14,389 nt of DNA. Origin: Zygophlyctis sp. KS116. Lineage: Eukaryota; Fungi; Chytridiomycota. Made by a program: the position numbers and the translations under genes. The notes under the pieces were generated by a model. It had not been told where the DNA came from. It saw nothing but the letters and a program-made list of their open reading frames with translations, and did no database searches. Positions 1,564 to 14,389 of this stretch are shown in pieces; position 1 is the stretch's first letter, and the number at the start of each line of letters is the position of its first letter. The stretch covers positions 1 to 14,389 of the forward strand of contig BAAFSQ010000250.1 of the NCBI GenBank assembly GCA_054661495.1, in the 5' to 3' direction.

Positions 1564-1781
1564 GACTTTTGATCTTTGTCGATCAACCACATTATCATCT
1601 GCTACAAATTCACAAGTAAGAAAACGCTACAAGGTTTAAGAAATATATCGAAACGAATGCTGGACAATTATGCAATCCATAGTGAATGTTTCTACAGTGA
1701 CCCATGCTTCGGACAACTGATATCGGAATTTAGGAACATTGCTGGTCCGATCTTTTGTTCGGAATTTAAAGATTAGAGATA

Positions 1782-3197
1782 ATGGCAACCTCAAAGACTT
1801 TAGATCGAAAAATTAATACTGAAACATTTTGTGGAATTTCAACTAAGAGAGTTTTATTCATCATCACAATTGTAACGCAATTTATAATCTTGTTGAATGG
1901 AGTCGTGACATTGACCACAGACAGTCTGGCTGAGCAAGCCTTTAAAAAGTATACAGCCACTACATTGCCGCAATTGGCCAATTTAAAATCATTATCCTGG
2001 AGAAATTGGAAGATTAATGAATTGCTCGTTGAATCATTGATCTTGAATTCAACCATGACACCTAATGTGTATCAATATTATACCATGGCTTACAAGTCGG
2101 CAATTGAATATGAAGATTCCCAGATAACTTCTGCCATGACTAATGAGAATGTTAACATATCGGCATTGATTAGCAAGTTAAAAAATGGAATTGAAGCTTC
2201 TATTTTGGCTGGAGCTCCTACTACAAGTTATGATGCAGATTTGGTTGCTTTGGATAATGCATTAATATCTCAATTAAACTCTCATTCTAGTTCTTTTGAG
2301 CAATCATTGTCTCATTTACAACAAGAAACAAAAATTGTCATGATTTTAAATGGAGTATTCTTGGGTATTATTTCTGTATTTCGTGTTATTGAAGGATATC
2401 TCTGCTTTTCTATTACCACGAGGGGATCACAGTCTCTTGAAGTATTTGGGGCCATGTCACATTTGGGTCTTTCGGTTCTTGAATGTGCTGCTTTCTTGAC
2501 CATGACAACGATTCGTTTTAATGATATTCAAAAATTGATTGATTTAATATATCCCTTGTACAATGCAGCTTGGGGAATCAAATATTATGATCCAATTTTA
2601 ACAGGATCAGCCATGAGATTTGTTTACTCTAATGGGAGTACAGAATGGTTGGATCGATATAATGCTGCTATTGATCCTCTAATTGCTTCCATTGATGTGG
2701 CTCGTTCTTTAGCTGTCTCTGCATCTGAAAAACTCTTGTTTAATTTGACAGATACAGCAAATACAGTTTTAGTGGAATTGGAAACGATTGCCTTGAATGA
2801 TTCTGTTGCGGGAGTAGCCAGTTTGACTGGAGATGCCTATACAACAAACAAGCAGATTTACTTGTATGCTATTGATCTATTTGTGAGCAAACAAGAGACA
2901 TCATTATATTCTTCTTTTGTGTCTTCAGCAACATTAACTACAGTCCTCTTGTATTGTGCATCATTCTTTACGGCCATCAGTTTGCTTAATTGGGTTCGAG
3001 AATTAATAAGACTATTTGATCCCAATGGTAATCTCAAGTATCGACTAAAGAATTCCTTGACTTCTACTCTTGCTATTGGACACGATCATGTTTCTGCTGT
3101 ATCTGGATCTCCAAAAGTCATATTAGAAGGATCTGAAAAACCGTCTGATGTGGCACCCCTTGTAATCTCTTCAAAAGAGGTTAAAGATGCCTTGTAG
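1782..3197 (+). CDS. Uncharacterised 4-TM membrane protein, 471 aa, intronless; two tandem TM-helical sensor-like domain-TM modules
   Basis: Long clean ORF with hydrophobic segments at about aa 23-45, 185-203, 220-242 and 384-405. Internal similarity at an offset of about 191 aa (W73/W264). Module 2 resembles bacterial four-helix periplasmic sensor domains. The ORF is solid; the function is inferred. Confidence 0.75.
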   Translation: MATSKTLDRKINTETFCGISTKRVLFIITIVTQFIILLNGVVTLTTDSLAEQAFKKYTATTLPQLANLKSLSWRNWKINELLVESLILNSTMTPNVYQYYTMAYKSAIEYEDSQITSAMTNENVNISALISKLKNGIEASILAGAPTTSYDADLVALDNALISQLNSHSSSFEQSLSHLQQETKIVMILNGVFLGIISVFRVIEGYLCFSITTRGSQSLEVFGAMSHLGLSVLECAAFLTMTTIRFNDIQKLIDLIYPLYNAAWGIKYYDPILTGSAMRFVYSNGSTEWLDRYNAAIDPLIASIDVARSLAVSASEKLLFNLTDTANTVLVELETIALNDSVAGVASLTGDAYTTNKQIYLYAIDLFVSKQETSLYSSFVSSATLTTVLLYCASFFTAISLLNWVRELIRLFDPNGNLKYRLKNSLTSTLAIGHDHVSAVSGSPKVILEGSEKPSDVAPLVISSKEVKDAL

Positions 3198-3310: not shown

Positions 3311-6087
3311 ATGAAAAATCCAATTCTAGAGTTTGAAAAAGAGTGCCAAGATAGAGATTATCCTTTAATAAATCAATTGTTAGTTTGTATTTCTGAGTTG
3401 TCCCCATTAGAGAAACATGAGGAATACGGTAGTCAATATAATTTACTCTTTAGGTATCAAATTATGGAATTTTATGGTTAGTATAGCAAACAAGGAGACA
3501 GATAAATGCAATTCCTTGTTTATAGCTCATGGGTAAAATACCAATAATAAATATAGAAAACATATAGCATGGAATTTACTCACTAAAGATGTTTGTTTGT
3601 ATGCGATCAAAGTAGGAAAGGCTTATTTTGATGCTAAAATGTATGATTTATCAAAAGAATTCTATGATGAGGCTCAAAAAGTAAGAATAGTATGCTGATT
3701 GTAGACTCTAAACGTGTCTCTAAAGAGAAATGATGCTTACTCTTACTGTCTATTAAATGTACATTTGTCTCAATTGGCAAATATTGAAAATTGTGCATCT
3801 AGTTTTGTTCTGGTCAAAAAAGCTATACAGGTTCAATTTATGAACTCATTATCTTGTGTTCAAGGCTATGATATTATATATGGGATTTTATTCAATGCAA
3901 AAAATACTCTAGATAAATTAGATTCTATAGAATGGTATAAATTGGCAATGGATGCATTAAGTAAAATTAAAGAGATTGATTCAAATGTTTTAAAAAATCA
4001 GAAATCTGCATTCATGATAGAAATAGCTCAGATTTATACTGAATTAGAGGACTATGATCAAGCAGAAAATATGATAATTCTCTCTTTTGAACAAGGCTCG
4101 AGTAATTTGATTGGATTTCGTGTGTTATTGGACATTACTTGTGCTAAATGGAAAAAGTCTGATCAAAATAATGAAAATGTAAAAGATGTCTTCAAAAGGA
4201 TGATTCAATCTCAAAATGATTTCAAGTCTCAGGCTTCTATAAAGCTTTATATGTCAATGATCTTCAAGGTTGAAAAAATATCTACAAATTTGGCAATTGA
4301 CTGTGTTGATCTCTTTCAGCCAAAATTATGGAAAAATAAGAATATTTCTTATGATTCATTTTTGGTTGTAAAAATATACTTGATGACTCTACAAAAAGAT
4401 GATTTTTCACCAGAATCATTTCAAAAACAGGTACAAGAGTTAACTAGGCAGGTCTCAATTGATGAAGACGTGAAACAATCTTGTCGTCTATTATTATTTC
4501 AGGCCGGAGATATTTCAGCAAATGAACAAAAATGGAATGATGCAATATTCTGGTATAGCCAAAGCGTTGTAATGTTTGGTGATTTAGATCAAGAAAATCA
4601 AAACTATGGTAAGAATTTATCATTTCTAATTTTAGCGATTTTGTATTCAAAACTAGCTATTTCTTATCTTAAGATTATGGAGATTGATTTAGCCAAAGAA
4701 TCAATTGACAAAGGTAATCAATACAGATTAAACTATAGCATATCATTCAAGAAGTGGAAGTTCGCCTATAGGAGACGTACTGGCTGTCCGTTTTTTGGTT
4801 CAAATGGAAAAAGGACTCACAAATGAAGCTGTAGAGACTTTGGATGCGATTAGTCAATTAAAAGATCCCAGACTACTGGTTCACGCTGCTGAAAGTGCAT
4901 TTAAAAAGGGAGATAAGAATCTCGTGAAACAAATCTTGAAAATATTTGCAGTTTCGGACATTGAATGGGATGCTCCAGATAATCAGCAAAAGTTATTCGT
5001 AATATTTAGGTAACTCTAATGATATTTAAAATTAGATGCTTGCTAAGATTAAATGAAGTCAATATTTCTGAATCAGATTCAAATGAATTAAAGTCGGAAT
5101 TGATAGAGGAAAGTCTTCGATATATTTCTAAAGTACTCCAACTTTGTTCAAAATGGTTTATTAAGGAAGCTGAACAGAATGAATATATCCAAAAAGAATT
5201 AGAATGGATGATTCAATCATCGTGGAATCAGGCTGTTGATGCTGAAAATTGTAGTTTAGAGCCATCTTCTTGCTTGTTATTTGAGCAAACAGCAGAGCTA
5301 ATCAATCTAAGCTATAAAACAGAATATCTTGAAAATCTTTATCAATGCTACTATTTCTCGATAAAGTATCGAATCAAAGAGTCACGGGAGAATAAACAGT
5401 CCTTATCAGAATCTGTACCAATAGCCAAAAAATCTTTTGATTCTCTATCGACTTTAATTCCACTGCTTAAAGATAAACTAGATCCGATTATACTCGATGA
5501 CTTGAAATCATTTTTGATTTTGTCAAACTTTGAAATGGAGCTTTTGAATGAAAATTGGGAAAACATATCCAAAATACTTGATTCTCCAGAATTATTAACA
5601 TACCGTGTATCCCTCTTGAAGTCTATGGCTGGTAATCAAGTTTAATTAACACAAATTAGACAAGGTGACATTGGATCATGATACACCGAGTGGTATTATG
5701 TATCTGACTCTTAAAAACACCATGAATGCTGTGATGAAGCGGGATACTGATTTCGATCTCGCAAAGTTTGCCCAGTGGTTTAGATTATTAATTCAGACAT
5801 CAGCTATAAGTAATGAATCTGTTACAATCGATCATCTGAATCAAGCCATCAAATTAATCAAATCATTCCCCTATTCAAAATCAGGCGGATATCCCATGTT
5901 GGAGATTGAATGGCTAATGATTACTAGTTGGAACATTGGAATGCGTTTATCAAGAATAGGAGATGAGAATCCAAGTATTGAATTCTTTCAAAAAGCTCTA
6001 GAAATCTCAAAACATTTGCCAGAAGAAATCGTTCCTGAACAGGTAAGTTTGCTCAAAATTAAAAATTCTCTCCGGTTGTTTAACTAA
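3311..6087 (+). CDS. SPO22: Meiotic TPR protein SPO22/ZIP4/TEX11, about 865 aa, 8 exons
   Basis: Introns 3429-3453, 3533-3556, 3681-3704, 4609-4635, 4714-4738, 5010-5035 and 5632-5659 give one frame. Family motifs: GIKLWN, KVGKAYFD...YDEA, WNDAIFWYSQS, NYAILYSKLAISYL, FRCLLRL, ELEWMIQSSWNQA, FAQWFRLLI, YPMLEIEWLMITSWNIG. The 3' end is ambiguous (6087 unspliced, or 6139 via intron 6043-6091). Confidence 0.85.
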
Positions 6088-6104
6088 AAAGATTAAAACC
6101 TGGA

Positions 6105-7087
6105 ATGATCACAGTCAAAGCTATACGGGAATTATCTGATGGTTCACAAGAAATTAGAAGAGCGCCTATTTCTCGGCTTCCTGGAGAATTAACGTTTGAT
6201 GAAGTATTTTTATTAATTTAATAAAAACTAGTTATGTATAATGGTCTGCAGATTGTTCAAGTTAAGTTCTGTTGATTCACTCTCTCTCAAATACTATGAT
6301 GATGAAGGGGATTTAGTAAATCTAGAAACAGACATTGACATTAGTCATGCTCTATCAATCAGCAATTTGTTAAAAGTAAAAATCATGGGTATCTATAAAT
6401 TTACTTAATTTAGAAAACGTTGAAATGGAAAAGCAATCTCCAATTTCTGCTGATCATTCTCTTTTACACGAGAAATTAGACAAGATTCTGAGTTTATTAT
6501 CTGTCAAACCTCTCACTAAAAAAGAAGTTGAAGATTTCTCATCTTTGGATAGAAAAGTTTCTTTAGAATCCTCCAATATTACCACAAACACGACATACTC
6601 TGTTGCTCCCAGTGCAACATCAATCACTGGTGCTGTCACTCCTGGCCGATCAACTCTATCAGAGGGATCGGAAAACTCCCGCCCAAATTTAGAAGTAGGA
6701 AAGTCTCCAAGTGCTCATGGTGCTCTAGTATCTCAGGTCCAATCAACAAGTTCATCATTAGCTGCGAATATCCAAGCAACTTCTGGTGTCCAAGTTTCCT
6801 ACTCTGGTGGGCAAGCGCCTTTTGCGCGAGCACCTTTTCCTGTTAGTGGACAGCCTTATCCATATGAACAATATCAACCTCCAGGACGGCCCAATTGGGG
6901 ACCACCCGCTTCTCATCCAGGCCAGGTTTCAGGACAGCTCTCTGGTCCTTTAGGCCCTGGGGCAAATCAGGGTGTTCCTTATCCAAACCAATATTCAGCA
7001 CCGGTCCGTTCTTATTATCAAGTAGGAAATCCTAATCGGCCTCCTCCTTCCAATCCAAGACCAAATTATCCTGGATACAATGGATGA
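6105..7087 (+). CDS. TFG-like protein: PB1 domain, short coiled-coil-like helix, P/Q/Y/G-rich tail; 309 aa, 3 exons (N-terminus missed by the ORF track)
   Basis: Introns 6204-6231 and 6389-6413 give MITVKAIRELSDGSQEIRRAPISRLPGELTFDE|LCIMVCRLF...LSLKYYDDEGDLVNLETDIDISHALSISNLLKVKI, with the PB1 basic Lys and the acidic OPCA motif, joined in frame to the 6425-7087 ORF. Confidence 0.8.
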
Positions 7088-7126
7088 ATTACAAATTTTA
7101 GTTTTTGGATTTTCAAATTTTAAAAC

Positions 7127-9342
7127 ATGAGACGCCAGTTCAAGTATAAGCCAGTGAGTGCAGATGGTCTGCATTGGTCTCAAGATAATCAGATTGCTTT
7201 CTGTACTCATGATGCAATCTTTATTATTGTATGCTGCTTGATTTTAATCCATAGAATCCAACAGAAAAGCTTTCTAGCACTCAAATCCTTTCACAAAAGT
7301 TCAAACCAAGGAGATTCTGGTTGGAAAATGATCATAATAATCTAGGTATTCATATAATTAGTTCTTAATGTATAGATCATATCAGATCCAGTCAGACTCT
7401 AAGCGATTCATTTATGAGTATTTGTTGGTCGCCGACAGGTCTTTCCTCTTTGGGAGGTTGCATGCTTCTTTCTATTTCTGCTCATCATTATGTACAAGTA
7501 CATGCTCCAGTTGATGATCCGAAAAGTGGATCATGGACAAAAGTGCTCGATTTAACTAAAACAATTGAAGGTTTGTCTAGAGAGGATCAAATACAAATAG
7601 ATCAGTTACAAAGCACTTGTAATTCTTAAGCTTTAATTTGATTAGGTGGGAGCTGGTCATATATGTTGCCAGGTGGTAAATCATGCATTGCTTCAATTGG
7701 TGATAAGTCTGGACGAATTATTTTCTTTATAATTTCAGAAAATAAAGTTTTAAAAACGTTTAGTATCCAAGTAGGTTATACATGGCTTTCAAAGTGTGCT
7801 TGGGCTGATTGGAAGGAGAATGGTCAAGAGAATTGTAAGATTTTATCTATTTATCTTTTAAGTCACATATTTTTCTACTGCTTCTGTTGATGGAACAGTA
7901 AAAATTTGGAAAATAAGGTTTTATAATGATCAAATTAAAGCCGAACTTCTACATCAAGTTTGTGAGCCTGATAAGTTGTTGGTGACTGCACTCTCTTTTA
8001 ACAATGGAATGGTACTTGGATCGTTTTAATTCTAGGAATTTCCGAAACTTGCATTTTCTAAAGGATATTCTCTCTATTCATGCTTGATCAATCCCGATAT
8101 AAAGGTTTCATCAATTAGATTGCCGTGTTTTATGAATATTTGCTGTAAGTATTTTCAAAAGTGATAATTTAGCGATAATTTGGAGTACATTTGATTCTTC
8201 ATTAAGAGTTTACACATTTGATGGAAATTGTTATATTTTATCCATTGATAAATCGGAATCGTTAGTTTTGATGGATGATGACTCTTCCGGGCTTAGAAAT
8301 GCAATTATTAAAACAGGCAGTAACTCTTTGGAAACAGAAGATGGAGAAGAACAACCTGAGGAGGATGACGAAGAGCCGGATCAAGTAGTAGTTTATGGGG
8401 CCTCATCATCTTTTAATAGTCTTTACGACTGTATCTTATTCACATCAACCAAAACCTATGATGTTAATTACAAAACGCTTGTTGATGAATCATGCTCAGT
8501 TTTAATTCGACCATTAGTTGATCCAAATGATGAAATGATTCTTGAAGATATCAAGCACTGCTTTGATTCTCCCATCAGTATTTTTTACTTATAACCATTA
8601 GAAATTTTGCATCCAATCTACAATCTCTGGGATATTTATGAACTATTTAAATCTTCTGATTCTACTATTCTCTCTGATATTCAAAATCAACTATTAGGAC
8701 AGTCTAGAGGTATCCTTACAAGTGATTTGGACAATATCCAAAATACTCTGTCATCTTTCCACTTTAAAGCTCATAAACTGGCTAGTTATTTAAGTTTATT
8801 AAGAGTAAGTTTTTTAAAGTAATATCTAGACTGGAAAAGTAGATTTTATATTTTATACTGAATCTATTATGTTCTACATCAAATACTTTTTATCTATTCT
8901 AAAAAGTTCAGAATCTCTTACCCCTACTGATATGAAAACCATTAGCATGATAAATTCACTTTATCTCTTAAATTCAAATGATTGGACTGACCTCTTGACT
9001 GAACTGATTAAATTTTACACTTTTCTTTCTAAAAACCAGTCAACTCAACGCATGGCAGAAGATTTACTCTCCTCACTAAAAGAAAATTCAAATCCAAATT
9101 CTATTCAAGAAGAATGCATCGTTTGTCAATCTGAAATTCATATTCTTGAAGTTGGAAGTGGTACCTGCATTAATGGACATGATTGGACACGTTGTTCACA
9201 GTGTTTCAAGTGCATTCAATCATTTTCTTATCGGGAATGCATTGGATGCAATGCAAAAGCATGCATCACAGATTCTATTAAATTAAACCATTGCATGATT
9301 TGCGGCTGCAGATTTCGTTTAGTTGGGATTGGATTTTCTTAG
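7127..9342 (+). CDS. GTF3C4: TFIIIC subunit GTF3C4/Tfc8/Sfc9 (TFIIIC-delta WD region plus C-terminal zinc finger), 667 aa, 9 exons
   Basis: Introns 7229-7254, 7346-7375, 7619-7645, 7835-7862, 8012-8035, 8145-8172, 8578-8601 and 8805-8829. Motifs: WSQDNQIA...IINP, WSPTGLSSLGGCML, TASVDGTVKIW, and the zf-TFIIIC pattern ECIVC...CINGHDWTRC...RECIGC...CMICG. Confidence 0.85.
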
Positions 9343-9378
9343 TAAAAAATTTCTTGTTTCACAAAATTGAATTTTTAA

Positions 9379-12300
9379 ATGGGAAAAAGAGCTCCAAGAT
9401 TCAATCAAAAGGCTAGATCGTCATCTTTACCAGCTAATGCACTTCCTCATCCAAGTCCAAGGGATGCCCCAGCAGTGACTGAAGGAAGTAAAAAAATGTC
9501 CAAAAAGAAGAGGATCCGATTCGAAAAGTTTGTGGAGAAGCAATTGAAAAAGGAAAATAGAATTATACTAATGGAAAAACTAAAGGAATTCAAGACAAAC
9601 GATTTATTTCAATCGTCAAAAAATCTGGGGAAAACCGTTCAAGTTGCAGCAGAGAAATCAAAATCTGTGAATTCTTCAAGGAAATCCAAGGCAATGCAAA
9701 AGAGCAGTGGGGCTGAACTTACTGTTTACTCTGAATCATCTGATGATGAAGATGCTGATGATCAGCAAGACTGCAACCTTTCTAATGAAATTGAAATTCA
9801 TAATCATGCAGATGAATCAGTTGTCAAAAATGATTCAGTCAATATGGAATTATGTCTGGATGATGAGACTGAATCTGATAAAGTCGACAAGATTGTTCAA
9901 AGTAATCAGAATTTGGAAATTATACAAGAGGAAAAAAAAGATTCCAAGGGAATAGAGTCAAAAAAGTTGCTAAATGCTAAACCTGCATTCTATGTTCCTG
10001 TACATAGGCCAAAAGAGATATCAGTGGCTCGAATGTCACTTCCAGTGGTTGGAGAAGAGCAATTGATTATGGAGACTATAATGGAGAATGATGTTACTGT
10101 ACTTTGTAGTGAAACTGGGTCAGGTAAAACTACCCAACTTCCGCAATTTCTATATGAAGCTGGTTTTGGGCATCCAGAGCATTCGAGTTATTCTGGGATT
10201 ATTGGAATTACTCAACCTAGAAGAGTTGCTGCGGTCAGTATGGCTGCTCGTGTTAGTCATGAAATGAATTTATTTAATGGAGAAGTATCTTACCAAATAA
10301 GATATGACAAAGGTCAGGTTAATAGCAAGACAAGAATCAAGTTTATGACTGATGGGATTTTGCTTAGGGAGCTAAGTCATGGTGGGGTAACTTCTTCAAA
10401 CTCTTCTAGTCTACTTTTAGCAGATTATTCTTGCATAATTATTGATGAAGCTCATGAAAGAACTGTAGGAACTGATATTTTATTAGGATGGTTAACTAGA
10501 GTGGTTAAATTGCGTAATTCAGGTCGTATAGAAGGTGTCAGACCTTTAAAATTGATCATAATGAGTGCTACTCTTCGTGTTGAAGATTTTACAGAAAATA
10601 AGTCTTTGTTTCCTCAAGCTCCCCCGCCAGTGATAAATATTCCTGGTCGACAACATAAAGTTGTGATTCGCTATAATAGAAATACTAGCACAGATTATGC
10701 ATCTGAAGCATATAAAAAGGCAGTAAAGATCCATACTCGTTTACCGCAAGGAGGGATCTTAATTTTTGTAACAGGGCAACACGAGGTTCAAATGCTGGTT
10801 AGAAAATTGAGACTTAAATTTTCATCAGTTAAAACCGATGTCGAAGAAGAGCATCAAAAAGGCAATATTGAGGGATTAAACTTATTGGAAGAATATCAGG
10901 AAGATTCAGAAGACGATTATGACTTGGAAAATATTTCTGATTTTGACTCAGAGTCAGTTCATTCTGAGGAAGAAGAAGTTCAAATATTAAATGGCACAGT
11001 GGAAGACGAAGATGTTGAAATTTTGACAGAATCTGAAACTAAAAATCGAGGTATGAAATTTTAAATTTCTTAATTGAAAGGTCCGATGCATGTACTTCCA
11101 TTATATTCTCTTTTGCCCAAGCAAGCACAATTGCGAATTTTTGAATCACCTCCCGAAGGATCCAGGCTAGTAGTTGTAGCTACTAATATTGCTGAGACTT
11201 CATTGACTATTCCAGGAATTAAATATGTGATTGATTCTGGAAAATCAAAGGAGCGTCTATCTGATCCAAAAACTGGTCTTCAGCGTTTTTGTATTGATTG
11301 GACTTCTAAAGCCGCCGCTGATCAGAGAGCAGGCCGTGCAGGTCGTGTGGGTCCTGGTCATTGTTATCGTCTTTACAGCTCTGCTGTTTTTGGAAATTAT
11401 TTTTCAGAATTTGCATCGCCGGAAATATCTAGAGTCCCATTGGATGGAGTAATTCTTCAAATGAAGGCAGTAGGGATCCAAAATATTTTAAATTTCCCGT
11501 TCCCGACCCAACCAGATTTAACCCAGTTGAAATCATCATATGAGGTATTTTTCATAAACTTAGTTATAGCTTCTTAAACACTTAAATACTCTTGATTCTA
11601 ATGAAAACATCACCACTTTAGGAAAGCGAATGTCATGCTTCCCTGTTTCTCCTAGATTTGCAAAAATGTAATTTTAATGTTTTAATTGAATAGGTTAATC
11701 GTGGCCTCACAACAATCTACATCCATTTTTGAATTTACAGTTTGTATGGTATCAGGATTATCAGTTGGAAGCCCATTTATCCATTTAGATCAAGGAAATG
11801 AAGAAGATTTGCAAGATGAAGAAAAACGGAAGAAGCGAACATCCTACTATAAGACTATGCAGGTATTTTTGCATTTATTTAAATAATTAGATTTTTAGTG
11901 GTAATAATCCTACTAGTGATGCTTTAAAACTTTTATCTGCTATCGGAGCCTATAAATTCCATAATGGAAATAAACAAGAGTTTTGTGAATCTCATTTCCT
12001 ATCATTCAAAACTATGGAAGAAATCAGTAAACTAATAAGTCAAATTACAAAAATATCTCATAAAATCCTTGGAACACCTAGCACCCCAAGTATTTCTAGA
12101 CCTCCTTTGGTATCTGAACAAACTCAACTTTTACAAATTTTACTTTCTGGGAATCCTGACAGAATTGCTAGATTAGTAAAACGTGATCGAAATGTTGGAA
12201 TTTATGAAACCATAGACTCGAATCATTCCTGGAAAATCCATTCTAGCAGTTGTCAAAATCAAAACCATCCATCTTGGATAATCTATTTAGAATCAATTTC

Positions 12301-12865
12301 AAAATCTGTCAGTTTATCTATTGATCAAGAATCAACACTTGGAACTAATTCTGATAAATTCTATCTAAATTTGGTCTCTATAGTTGAACCCAATTGGATG
12401 ACTAATTTACTTCCTAAAGCTCTATTAAAAAGCGGCAAAATCCTTGATCAACCTCTACCTAGATATGATTCAACCTTGGACAGTATAATTGTTTACTTAT
12501 CTCCTACTTATGGACCTAAATCCTGGCCTCTATCTATTCAATCGCGCCCATTATCATCTAGTGATCCTGAATCACCACTTTTGGTCGCTAGATTCCTACT
12601 TCAAGGTAAATTATTCCCTAATTTCTCTTGGCCTCGTCTTCGTTTCAACCCATCTCTTTTGAATAGTTCTAGAGGACTATTATTAGGAAAACCCTTTATT
12701 CTACATCTGTTATCGTGTCTTGAGGGTGTACTTAATGTGCAAGATTTTAGAAAGAAATGGGAGACTGATCCTAATTGGTTATATCCTCAATTACTGGAAT
12801 GGATACATGAAGAATGCAGACAAGAGTTTTGCATTGGATGGAAAAGTTTGAAGTCAAATTTTTGA
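9379..12865 (+). CDS. DHX37: DEAH-box RNA helicase DHX37/Dhr1(Ecm16), 1125 aa, 5 exons
   Basis: Introns 11051-11080, 11545-11569, 11668-11693 and 11863-11890. Motifs: [86 protein letters not shown]. The VPVHRP..I..AR..LP segment and the acidic insert in RecA2 are typical of Dhr1. Confidence 0.93.
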
Positions 12866-12894
12866 GTGAAAATTTCTCGTAAAAAAAAATTGAA

Positions 12895-14389
12895 ATGATG
12901 ACGACTTCTACACAAGAGTCTCAAGTTTTTGTTGGAAAAGAATTGCACACAAAAGAACAAGAAGTTACTGAGACTATTCCATCGGTCCCTCAAGATGTTG
13001 AAATGGAAGAAGCTGTAAAACCAATGACGGCACCTGTTCCTTCAAATGGTTTGTCGTCGTCTGCTCCTTTAGCAGCTGCAGTGACTGATACTTCAAATGT
13101 CAGAGTTTTTGATTCTATGACTGATACAACTAGTACTGCTCAGTCTGCAGTACCCACAGGAGCTGAAGTACCTGAAATGCCATCTCTACCAGAACCAGCT
13201 CCTCATGCTGCTCCTCCTGTAGCTACTCCAGCTCCTCATGCTGCTGCTCCTCCTGTTACTACCGTTGTCAAGGAAGAAGTGACTGCTGTAGCCCAAAATG
13301 TGCCAAGTTCAAATGTAATGGATACTGCAGACTCAAACCCAAAAGAATCAGATACTGTTCAAAACTCTGTAGATGTAAAACCAGTCATAGAAACTGCTAC
13401 AGAAAGTATGCAGGGTACTTTAGTTCAACACGAGTTGGAAAAGTTGATTATTCAAGAGCAATTCAAGTTTGCTTCAAATATTGTGAAGCAGTTAAAAAAG
13501 AGAAAAGAAGGATTTCTCTTTAGTAATCCAGTAGATCCAGTTCAATTAAATATTCCTACATACTTTGATGTGATTGAATCTCCAATGGATTTATCAACAG
13601 TAGAAAAAAAGTTAAGTTCTCAGTCTTACAAGTCTCCTAATGAAGTAAAAGAAGATATTATTCTAATGTTTAATAATTGTTACAAATTTAATGGAATGGA
13701 AGCTCAAGTTTCAAAAATGGGAATGGATTTACAGAAATATTTTGAAAAAGAATGGGAAAAGTTGCCCAAAGAGGTGAGTAAATTCTTTCTAAAGTATTAG
13801 CTGAAAGAAAAGAAGAAAAAGTCTTCAAGGCCTATTAGTAATCAAACACATGGTGAAGGAGTACATCGTCCCAGAAGGGAAGTTACTTCTATTCCACGTG
13901 AGCCAACAGTTTCAGAAGTTAAGGCTTCTTCAGGACGGAAATTGACTCCACAATTGAAATTTGCCTCTTCTCTTTTAAGAGATTTAATGAAAAAGCATTA
14001 TAATCCGTACAATCTGGCTTTTCTTGTACCAGTGGATCCTGATGCTCTTGGAATTCCTCAATATAGAGACATTATCAAGAATCCAATGGATTTGTCTACA
14101 ATGAGAAAAAAGATGGACGCAGGGCAATATAAAGATGGTGATGAATTTGAAGCAGATGTGCGGTTAATGTTTAGAAATTGTTATACATTTAATGCTCCTG
14201 GCTCTGAAGTTTACAATTTGGGAAAGGAGTTGGAAGCTGTTTTTGATCGTAAATGGGCCGACAAACCAGCTCCAGGGGATTATATTGAAGACAAAAATAG
14301 AAGATCTTCTCATTATCACTCTGCAGTATATTTGGACGAAGAAGATTCTGGAGATGATGGTAAGTCTTTTTTTAAACTTAAATATAGAT
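12895..14389 (+). CDS. BDF1: BET-family double-bromodomain protein (Bdf1-like), 3' partial
   Basis: BD1 FSNPVDPVQLNIPTYFDVIESPMDL...NCYKFN; intron 13774-13800; linker RPRREV; BD2 FLVPVDPDALGIPQYRDIIKNPMDL...DVRLMFRNCYTFN; intron 14360-14387. The ET domain would lie beyond the window. Confidence 0.9.
13195..13263 (+). repeat. Coding tandem duplication (33/36 nt): PAPHAAPPVAT / PAPHAAAPPVTT
   Basis: ccagctcctcatgctgctcctcctgt at 13195 recurs at 13228 with one extra gct. Confidence 0.85.

Follow-up and report, generated by a model that had tools for sequence, protein, structure and literature searches.

A four-pass membrane protein of a chytrid fungus with a bacterial-type sensor module and no transmitter: a candidate eukaryotic receptor

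Can a eukaryotic membrane protein that consists of sensor modules of the bacterial type, and of little else, act as a receptor? The question is raised by a gene of Zygophlyctis sp. KS116 (Chytridiomycota), located on the forward strand at positions 1782..3197 of contig BAAFSQ010000250.1 (assembly GCA_054661495.1), whose stretch of 14,389 nucleotides, analysed at its full length, is referred to below as the window. According to the listing of open reading frames (ORFs), the gene is intact and without introns, and consists of 471 codons and a stop codon. An earlier note, made from the letters of the window, had described the product as an orphan receptor in which two helical sensor modules of the bacterial type stand in tandem and no output domain follows, and this interpretation is supported here in all of its testable parts. 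In particular, the product is a four-pass protein without a transmitter, in which one module (module 2) is a bona fide sensor and another helical module (module 1) occupies the paralogous position. As such it is a candidate for a type of eukaryotic receptor not described before; in a full-text search of the literature, no paper was found on a four-helix-bundle sensor protein of such a kind in eukaryotes, nor any on chytrid zoospore chemotaxis that also mentions a four-helix bundle.

Kinship and fold of module 2

Module 2, the ectodomain at aa ~244-382 (2511..2927; all the features of the protein given here are encoded on the forward strand), is by profile, AlphaFold2 model and fold matches a canonical four-helix-bundle sensor domain. 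It contains three N-x-S/T sequons, and its motif core at aa 264-361 (2571..2864) reads W.IKYYDPILTGSA ... W.DRY..A.DPL ... AN..LVELET.AL ... Y..NK.IY in blocks set beside the bacterial rows. A word-based search gave only three close relatives, and the alignment of these was used as the seed of a family profile. An exhaustive profile search with the family alignment retrieved 264 proteins at E<=1e-3; outside the close family, the matched part is at profile positions ~220-400 (module 2 together with the third and fourth transmembrane helices, TM3 and TM4), and it falls on residues ~20-200 of proteins of 500-650 aa. The output domains found among 85 scanned matches were HATPase_c (24), GGDEF (21), HisKA (19), MCPsignal (16), HAMP (12), receiver (9) and EAL (7), the nearest matches being HAMP-kinases, chemoreceptors and GGDEF-EAL proteins. 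In these bacterial proteins the domain lies between two membrane helices and HAMP comes next, at about residue 200. The consensus of the 85 distant matches, IxYLDEVLTxSA..W..RY...LD.AI...T..AN..LV.LE..AF...Y...K..Y, is nearly letter for letter the sensor motif that the earlier note had given for this module.

The reciprocal comparison gave the same answer. A profile built from 84 bacterial-type domains only matches the window protein at aa 229-406 with 116.5 bits (E 1.2e-28 at Z = 1.84e9, that is, 1.84 billion sequences), while the best of 2000 shuffles of the protein reached 12 bits. In the 97-sequence alignment, module 2 has all the residues that the bacterial family keeps invariant (D270, Y293, L330, E334, Y353 and K357) or near-invariant (L273, T274, W289, R292, L300, N327 and Y360), and the invariant ones are retained in 13/13 rows, which cover chytrids, Chromera, Rhodelphis and the window. 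Judged by sequence, the homology of module 2 to an extracytoplasmic sensor domain of bacteria is genuine.

The domain belongs to a distinct, unnamed and structurally unsolved family within the four-helix-bundle sensor class. In fact, the window protein has no match at E<=1 to 4HB_MCP_1 (PF12729), TarH (PF02203) or CHASE3 (PF05227), the best score of the bacterial relatives against 4HB_MCP_1 is 24.5 bits, below the cut-off of 27, with traces of TarH, and sequence searches of the PDB, made with the whole protein and with a profile of each module, returned chance-level rows only. The neighbours proposed by a protein language model are the 4HB_MCP_1, CHASE3, TarH and PilJ clusters. The bacterial family, recognisable by the blocks YLDEVLT.SA, W..RY...LD, AN..L..LE and Y...K..Y, is reached by no Pfam model above threshold, and none of its members has a solved structure; it shares with module 2 an identity of 20-31%, the layout of a bundle between two transmembrane helices and a size of ~150 aa. 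It differs in what surrounds the domain: the bacterial proteins carry one copy, or two in one periplasmic loop, followed by HAMP, PAS and an enzymatic or MCP output, whereas in the window protein two modules are parted by a membrane hairpin and nothing follows. The flanking membrane helices of the bacterial members are therefore present, and the cytoplasmic transmitter is not, its place being taken by a 66-aa disordered tail without a Pfam domain. A search for related loci with the closest bacterial subgroup led to three metagenome-assembled genomes only (Actinomycetes, Gaiellales and a Deltaproteobacterium).

The predicted structure is in line with this kinship. Modelled by AlphaFold2 with the 97-sequence alignment, module 2 reaches a predicted local distance difference test (pLDDT) of 95.6 and a predicted template-modelling score (pTM) of 0.85, and consists of four helices (2-68, 73-96, 100-135 and 137-195 in module numbering) that form an up-down bundle, of which the first and last helices continue into the membrane helices. 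The leading rows of a Foldseek search with module 2 were the Adeh_2942 kinase sensor (4k0d), Vc1313-LBD (8bsa), MCP2201-LBD, Tar, NarQ and Tsr, with probabilities of 0.84-1.0, E-values of only about 0.01-0.1, and template-modelling scores (TM-scores) by target of 0.73-0.75 for 4k0d_A and 8bsa and of 0.26-0.60 for the other rows. When module 2 was compared by VIA-align with 48,161 PDB representatives, the top ten were all periplasmic four-helix-bundle sensors (Z 12.2-15.4), in the order HK9 (3va9, Z 15.4), Vc1313 (8bsa, 15.0) and MCP2201 (9kup, 14.8), then McpS, LytS-N, McpN, PcaY_PP, QseE, NarQ and Adeh_2942, and the generic bundles came below them. The profile and structural matches to prokaryotic four-helix-bundle sensors that the earlier note had proposed to look for were thus found on both counts. 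The sensors of the 4HB_MCP_1/TarH type (Tar, Tsr, NarX/NarQ, McpN, PcaY_PP, Vc1313, MCP2201, HK9 and Adeh_2942) share with module 2 the fold and the continuity of helices 1 and 4 with the membrane, at Z 12-15 and a root-mean-square deviation (rmsd) of 1.9-3.7 A over 114-173 residues, in most cases 2.0-2.5 A. Unlike the window protein, they are homodimers that carry transmitters; they show no sequence match to it, with identities mostly of 6-15% and up to 18% in Foldseek. The conserved residues of module 2 are spaced i, i+3/4 and i+7 on all four helices, in the membrane-distal half of the bundle, and probably line a buried polar pocket or network.

Membrane plan and module 1

The Kyte-Doolittle profile of the protein has four peaks, TM1 (~23-45), TM2 (~183-207), TM3 (~221-243) and TM4 (~383-405), and gives the layout TM-(137 aa)-TM-(13 aa)-TM-(139 aa)-TM-(66-aa tail), close to the spacing of ~140 and ~135 aa given in the earlier note. 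The chain opens with an N-terminal stub of aa 1-22 (1782..1847; pLDDT <50 for aa 1-18), which has 5 K/R and 2 D/E and is assigned to the cytosol by charge count and positive-inside reasoning. By hydropathy and alignment there follow TM1 (1848..1916), with the conserved polar residues Q32 and N38; the module 1 ectodomain at aa ~46-182 (1917..2327), a four-helix unit as predicted by AlphaFold2, with two N-x-S/T sequons; TM2 (2328..2402), with a conserved N190; a short cytosolic loop of aa 208-220 (2403..2441), by hydropathy and AlphaFold2; and TM3 (2442..2510), with a conserved intramembrane glutamate, E234, in the context LEC/LES. After module 2, TM4 (2928..2996) is unusually well conserved (L389, Y391, A393, T397, I399-L402), nearly to the level of the sensor motif within the window's subfamily, in which polar residues are conserved in all the membrane helices: Q32, N38 (TM1), N190 (TM2), E234 (TM3) and T397/S400 (TM4). 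The cytosolic tail of aa 406-471 (2997..3194) is basic next to the membrane, then predicted to be disordered (pLDDT 25-46) and poorly conserved in the alignment, with no Pfam match. Positive charge is concentrated at the N-terminal stub and directly after TM4, and 5/5 of the N-x-S/T sequons are within the two loops, the chance of which is ~0.07; charges and sequons fit a protein with both ends cytosolic and the loops outside. No output domain was found in the protein, since Pfam and NCBIfam are without a match even at E<=1-10, so that the claim that no HAMP, kinase, cyclase or MCP domain follows holds.

The AlphaFold2 model of the whole protein, based on a four-sequence family alignment (pLDDT 70.8, pTM 0.66), repeats one plan in both modules: each starts with a membrane helix prolonged into a long helix and, after two shorter helices, ends with a long helix that re-enters the membrane. 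Module 1 has its helices at 21-88, 94-116, 123-143 and 148-211 (pLDDT 56-89), and module 2 at 217-269 (with short turns to 282), 287-310, 314-349 and 351-412; the tail is disordered (pLDDT <50).

A likeness of sequence between the two halves is a different matter. The alignment of the halves at an offset of about 191 aa, which the earlier note had reported, was not recovered: BLASTP of module 1 against module 2 gave nothing beyond the 45-aa overlap of the cut pieces. The bacterial-only profile does not score on module 1, which has lost the canonical sensor motif and has a family motif of its own (LSWRNWKI.E and FD.NL.ALD), and a jackhmmer search begun with this ectodomain converged without leaving the module's own family. 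By a strict hhalign, module 1 compared with the bacterial domains and with canonical module-1 sequences gave E 0.047 and 0.59, neither significant; with a broader module-1 alignment, to which rows of Rhodelphis and Phlyctochytrium had been added, hhalign gave E 8.5e-5 (probability 60%, 174 columns), and the match spans from membrane helix to membrane helix. In hhalign and in the MAFFT alignment of module 1, which includes that of Rhodelphis, N75 stands opposite D270 and W73 opposite Y268, an offset of 195, so that the register first claimed is off by one helical turn.

It is in the relatives that a recognisable first module is found. The four-pass proteins P0022, P0062, P0070, P0076 and P0093 have both modules canonical, with 78-113 bits each against the bacterial profile, and dinoflagellate and green-alga proteins retain both in this state. 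Furthermore, module 1 of the Rhodelphis protein P0014 scores 22 bits end to end and that of P0066 17 bits, and module 2 of P0014 falls inside the window's own clade. Because relatives have a recognisable module 1, we infer that the module 1 of the window protein is a decayed duplicate that has acquired a motif of its own. The claim of a duplication with one degenerate copy is, then, upheld by the relatives in which both copies are canonical, and not by any self-similarity of sequence within the window protein.

Among proteins of bacterial architecture, another form of tandem was observed: P0055, P0059, P0077, P0092 and P0145 contain two motif domains in one periplasmic loop of ~280 aa, between membrane helices at ~20 and ~310-340, with kinase or GGDEF outputs in the three that were scanned (P0055, P0077 and P0092). 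Duplication of the domain is in this sense recurrent, and of a different form in bacteria.

Other known proteins resemble the whole model rather than module 2. The NIT domain of NasR and the HBM domain of McpS also combine a pair of adjacent helical bundles within a single chain, and NasR (4akk_B) is the best PDB match of the whole model, with Z 13.8 over 269 residues aligned across both modules, a value that can also be attained by unrelated helical proteins; for McpS against module 2, Z is 13.7. However, these are single soluble or periplasmic domains without a membrane hairpin, and the window protein has no Pfam match to NIT or HBM. The best match in shape of the whole model is the PF28326 (Sensor_actino) cluster of the ESM Atlas, actinobacterial ‘secreted proteins’ of ~458 aa (TM-score 0.69/0.71 over 387 residues, rmsd 3.6 A, aa 18-416), a match between predicted structures without a sequence link. 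It may represent a bacterial protein of the same size that shares the whole two-module layout. In 251 sampled Actinomycetota genomes the window-family profile found one single-module match only, in the seed genome, and no mention of PF28326 was found in the literature.

In the Foldseek search with the whole model nothing was found at E<=1e-3. Its top row, TTYH3 (E 3.6e-3), was rejected as kin, having a TM-score of 0.14-0.2, an rmsd >20 A, no sequence relation and no Pfam match, and the transporter and toxin rows were rejected at TM-scores <0.25. Proteins of the TTYH/prominin type are similar in being eukaryotic and multi-pass, and in having an extracellular helical bundle formed by extensions of their membrane helices. 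TTYH proteins cross the membrane with five helices, against four in the window protein, and two hairpins make up their single bundle. No known eukaryotic four-pass family, in which the earlier note had seen a possible refutation, claims the protein.

The gene, its host and its eukaryotic relatives

By a Pfam scan, the neighbours of the gene on the contig are an AIF-like flavoprotein, a SPO22/ZIP4-like protein, a DEAH helicase and a bromodomain protein, and the guanine-plus-cytosine (GC) content is ~35% across the window, in the sensor gene and its eukaryotic neighbours alike. The AIF-like gene (270-1391), divergent to the sensor gene, is one unbroken ORF; the SPO22/ZIP4-like and DEAH helicase genes downstream (3429-14389) are split into successive short ORFs, consistent with very short introns. 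An intron-free gene of bacterial ancestry within an intron-dense genome is an observation that may bear on the history of the gene. Upstream of the ATG the frame stays open for 4 codons only. In the assembly (12.7 Mb, 1175 contigs) the sensor gene has a copy number of 1, and neither a second copy of the sensor domain nor a paralogue, free or fused to an output domain as the earlier note had suggested searching for, was found there.

The DNA of the window is present in many freshwater metagenomes, and some of them assemble the same locus independently, in contigs of 25 kb and 5.6 kb. A second strain (run X3) differs from the window ORF at 8 positions, 6 of them synonymous, with 0 indels, and the two nonsynonymous differences are at the extremes of the ORF (I11S and A470V); differences that are mostly synonymous and free of indels indicate that the frame is under purifying selection. 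Two freshwater metatranscriptome libraries contain short contigs on the gene, at 1822-1978 and 2733-2974, which are weak evidence of its transcription. The loose 5' end of RNA contig X20 was considered as a splice and rejected, its first 23 letters, clipped by the aligner, being a strain variant of window positions 1799-1821.

Around the start of the gene, an antisense ORF of 96 aa at 1766-2056 (reverse strand) overlaps it and is most likely a chance frame, without support of its own. The intergenic region upstream (1496-1704) is the only place with small strain indels relative to the window, and in runs X2 and X3 an extra short contig of higher depth and opposite strand lies on 1481-1545, perhaps as a small repeat within the shared promoter region. 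An Rfam scan of the window gave no match.

Is the host an organism that swims? The genome encodes IFT57 (E 9e-42, G000:C160:10226-11250 on the reverse strand, in two pieces), and the organism accordingly builds a cilium or flagellum, so that the ‘zoosporic’ host on which the chemoreceptor proposal of the earlier note depended is a fair description; tektin was not found in the genome search. The in-frame TAG/TAA inside the IFT57 matches are as expected of read-through very short introns. Two HisKA phospho-acceptor matches, 3.5 kb apart on the forward strand (G000:C178:15592-15738 and 19112-19258), indicate that histidine-kinase signalling is encoded; both lie on a contig other than that of the sensor gene.

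The protein has relatives in at least five groups of eukaryotes, so that ‘orphan’ is right for the ligand and wrong for the kinship. The named relatives are the chytrids Phlyctochytrium bullatum and Dinochytrium kinnereticum, which are the nearest, and Chromera velia, Rhodelphis limneticus, Gymnodinium smaydae, Symbiodinium spp. and Tetraselmis astigmatica; all are annotated only as hypothetical, uncharacterised or unnamed. Members are annotated in the genomes of Symbiodinium, Phlyctochytrium, Dinochytrium and Chromera, and several come from transcript assemblies; P0076, in GCA_905221605.1 (one of seven Symbiodinium genomes), is a multi-intron gene of 6.4 kb. No Pfam domain was found in the 18 eukaryote-type or unassigned relatives that were scanned, including the transcript-derived P0014, P0022, P0040, P0062 and P0070. 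In the closest relative (L003:1859-3296) the gene is called as two overlapping ORFs of 165 aa and 317 aa, a sign that between module 1 and TM2 the sequence of that relative has a frameshift, a short intron or a fault of assembly.

In a quick, unrooted maximum-likelihood tree, the family of the window forms one clade, with a Shimodaira-Hasegawa-like approximate likelihood ratio test (SH-aLRT) support of 99. The dinoflagellate/Tetraselmis type forms another, in which the core module-1 and core module-2 rows are sister clades with a support of 92; beside these, without resolution, stand both Tetraselmis modules, module 2 of P0061 and the ungrouped row P0083. A single origin of all the eukaryotic modules is neither supported nor rejected by the approximately unbiased (AU) test (p 0.224). 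Most likely the sensor domain came from bacteria, which is the economical reading because the bacterial members are far more numerous and architecturally more varied.

From sensor module to receptor: the readings compared

Taken together, these data make it probable, although far from certain, that the protein is a receptor-like membrane protein in which a single chain forms a pseudo-dimer, with a bacterial-type sensor module and a readout by a partner; its role as a receptor, its ligand and its partner are parts that we infer. Such a protein would reside in the plasma membrane, or face a lumen, with both ends in the cytosol and two outward loops folded as four-helix bundles, each of them continuous with its two flanking membrane helices. 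One chain would in this way build an arrangement that bacterial sensors of the Tar/NarX type reach only as homodimers. The polar pocket of module 2 would bind the same small ligand as the bacterial family, with the decayed module 1 serving as the ‘second subunit’ of the pseudo-dimer, and binding would shift TM4 against TM3 within a four-helix membrane bundle that the polar residues Q32, N38, N190, E234, T397 and S400 could hold together. The route by which a separate partner protein would then read the change would be either TM4, which is conserved, together with the basic segment next to the membrane and the tail, or the polar core in the membrane.

Several observations weigh against this reading. 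The four-helix bundle is a common fold, and Z ~13 is within reach among helical proteins; no solved structure is related to the sensor family by sequence in the PDB profile search, and the family, bacterial or eukaryotic, has no known ligand. The ‘pocket’ is derived from the spacing of residues and not from a structure. The packing of the pseudo-dimer comes from a model of medium confidence with only 4 sequences (the pLDDT of 70.8 and pTM of 0.66 given above), and the other four AlphaFold2 models scored 49-59. The homology of module 1 is not demonstrable within the window protein by strict hhalign, jackhmmer, the bacterial profile or the PDB profile. Finally, the RNA support consists of two short contigs that are possibly carried-over DNA, and the direction of transfer is not proven by a tree that is unrooted and poorly resolved.

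Three other explanations were weighed. A eukaryotic receptor would lose its meaning if the gene were a bacterial contaminant, a chance ORF or a fragmentary pseudogene of a bacterial kinase, as might be suspected of an intron-free gene whose sensor domain is overwhelmingly bacterial and whose downstream neighbours are in many short exons. This is scarcely credible: the gene lies in a 14-kb contig between SPO22/ZIP4, DEAH helicase and bromodomain genes of the same GC content, the same arrangement was assembled independently from freshwater runs, relatives are annotated in four eukaryotic genera, one of them with multiple introns, and the four-pass, two-module layout is unlike the bacterial matches. 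As far as sequence can go, a non-eukaryotic origin of the gene is refuted. A eukaryotic protein could still have lost its signalling and serve as a ligand sink, as a surface protein or adhesin, or as a membrane scaffold in which a stable helical ectodomain is put to another use. The decay of module 1, the disordered and unconserved tail, and the lack of an output domain in the window protein and in every scanned eukaryotic relative agree with such a fate; however, module 2 has kept all the invariant residues of the bacterial family in all 13 rows, TM3 and TM4 are conserved as well, which a passive scaffold would not need, and the strain differences are mostly synonymous, so that we consider a loss of signalling rather unlikely.

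The conservation of the membrane helices, which speaks against a passive scaffold, is also what would be expected of a channel or transporter, in which four membrane helices, alone or as an oligomer, would form a polar pathway that the bundles gate or decorate. The polar residues of the membrane helices are conserved in the window's subfamily, TM4 is conserved beyond the need of a simple anchor, the membrane bundle of the whole model superposes on the four-pass bundles of Cys-loop receptors at Z 11-12, and the best Foldseek row of the whole model is the TTYH family. Yet neither the Cys-loop nor the TTYH match is strong or specific (the latter at the low TM-scores given above, the former below the Z of ~13 attained among helical proteins), a polar core would be needed equally by a single-chain four-helix signalling bundle in order to cohere, E234 is absent in the Chromera and Rhodelphis members, and the sole part of the protein with proven kin is the sensor domain of signalling proteins. 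A channel or transporter is, on balance, distinctly unlikely, and the partner-read receptor is the reading that we retain.

Reuse of prokaryotic sensor domains by eukaryotes has precedents. The CHASE domain of plant cytokinin receptors is a bacterial-type sensor domain reused by eukaryotes. Two papers (PMC8915833, PMC4822843) describe such a case on a surface protein of eukaryotes, the Cache domain in the alpha2-delta subunits of calcium channels, a ligand-binding module of prokaryote type. Unlike module 2, both have PAS-like folds and not a four-helix bundle, and their output or partner is known.

The receptors by which zoospores and other swimming protists detect chemicals are largely unknown, and the sensor family provides a concrete candidate, whose ectodomain is demonstrably related to the ligand sensors of bacteria and has been kept under selection in several groups of eukaryotes, swimming forms among them. 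A bolder proposal, which we hold to be possible and rather improbable, is that the protein is the ligand-binding part of an unrecognised chemosensory pathway of bacterial ancestry in the swimming stages of chytrids (zoospores), dinoflagellates, chromerids, Rhodelphis and prasinophytes, in which a single chain would replace the receptor dimer and would hand the signal on to a separate partner, in the membrane or in the cytosol, or gate its own polar core. As a structural solution, the protein would be a single-chain version of a receptor that bacteria make as a dimer. The finding also draws attention to the bacterial sensor family itself, and a ligand identified on the bacterial or on the eukaryotic side would inform the other.

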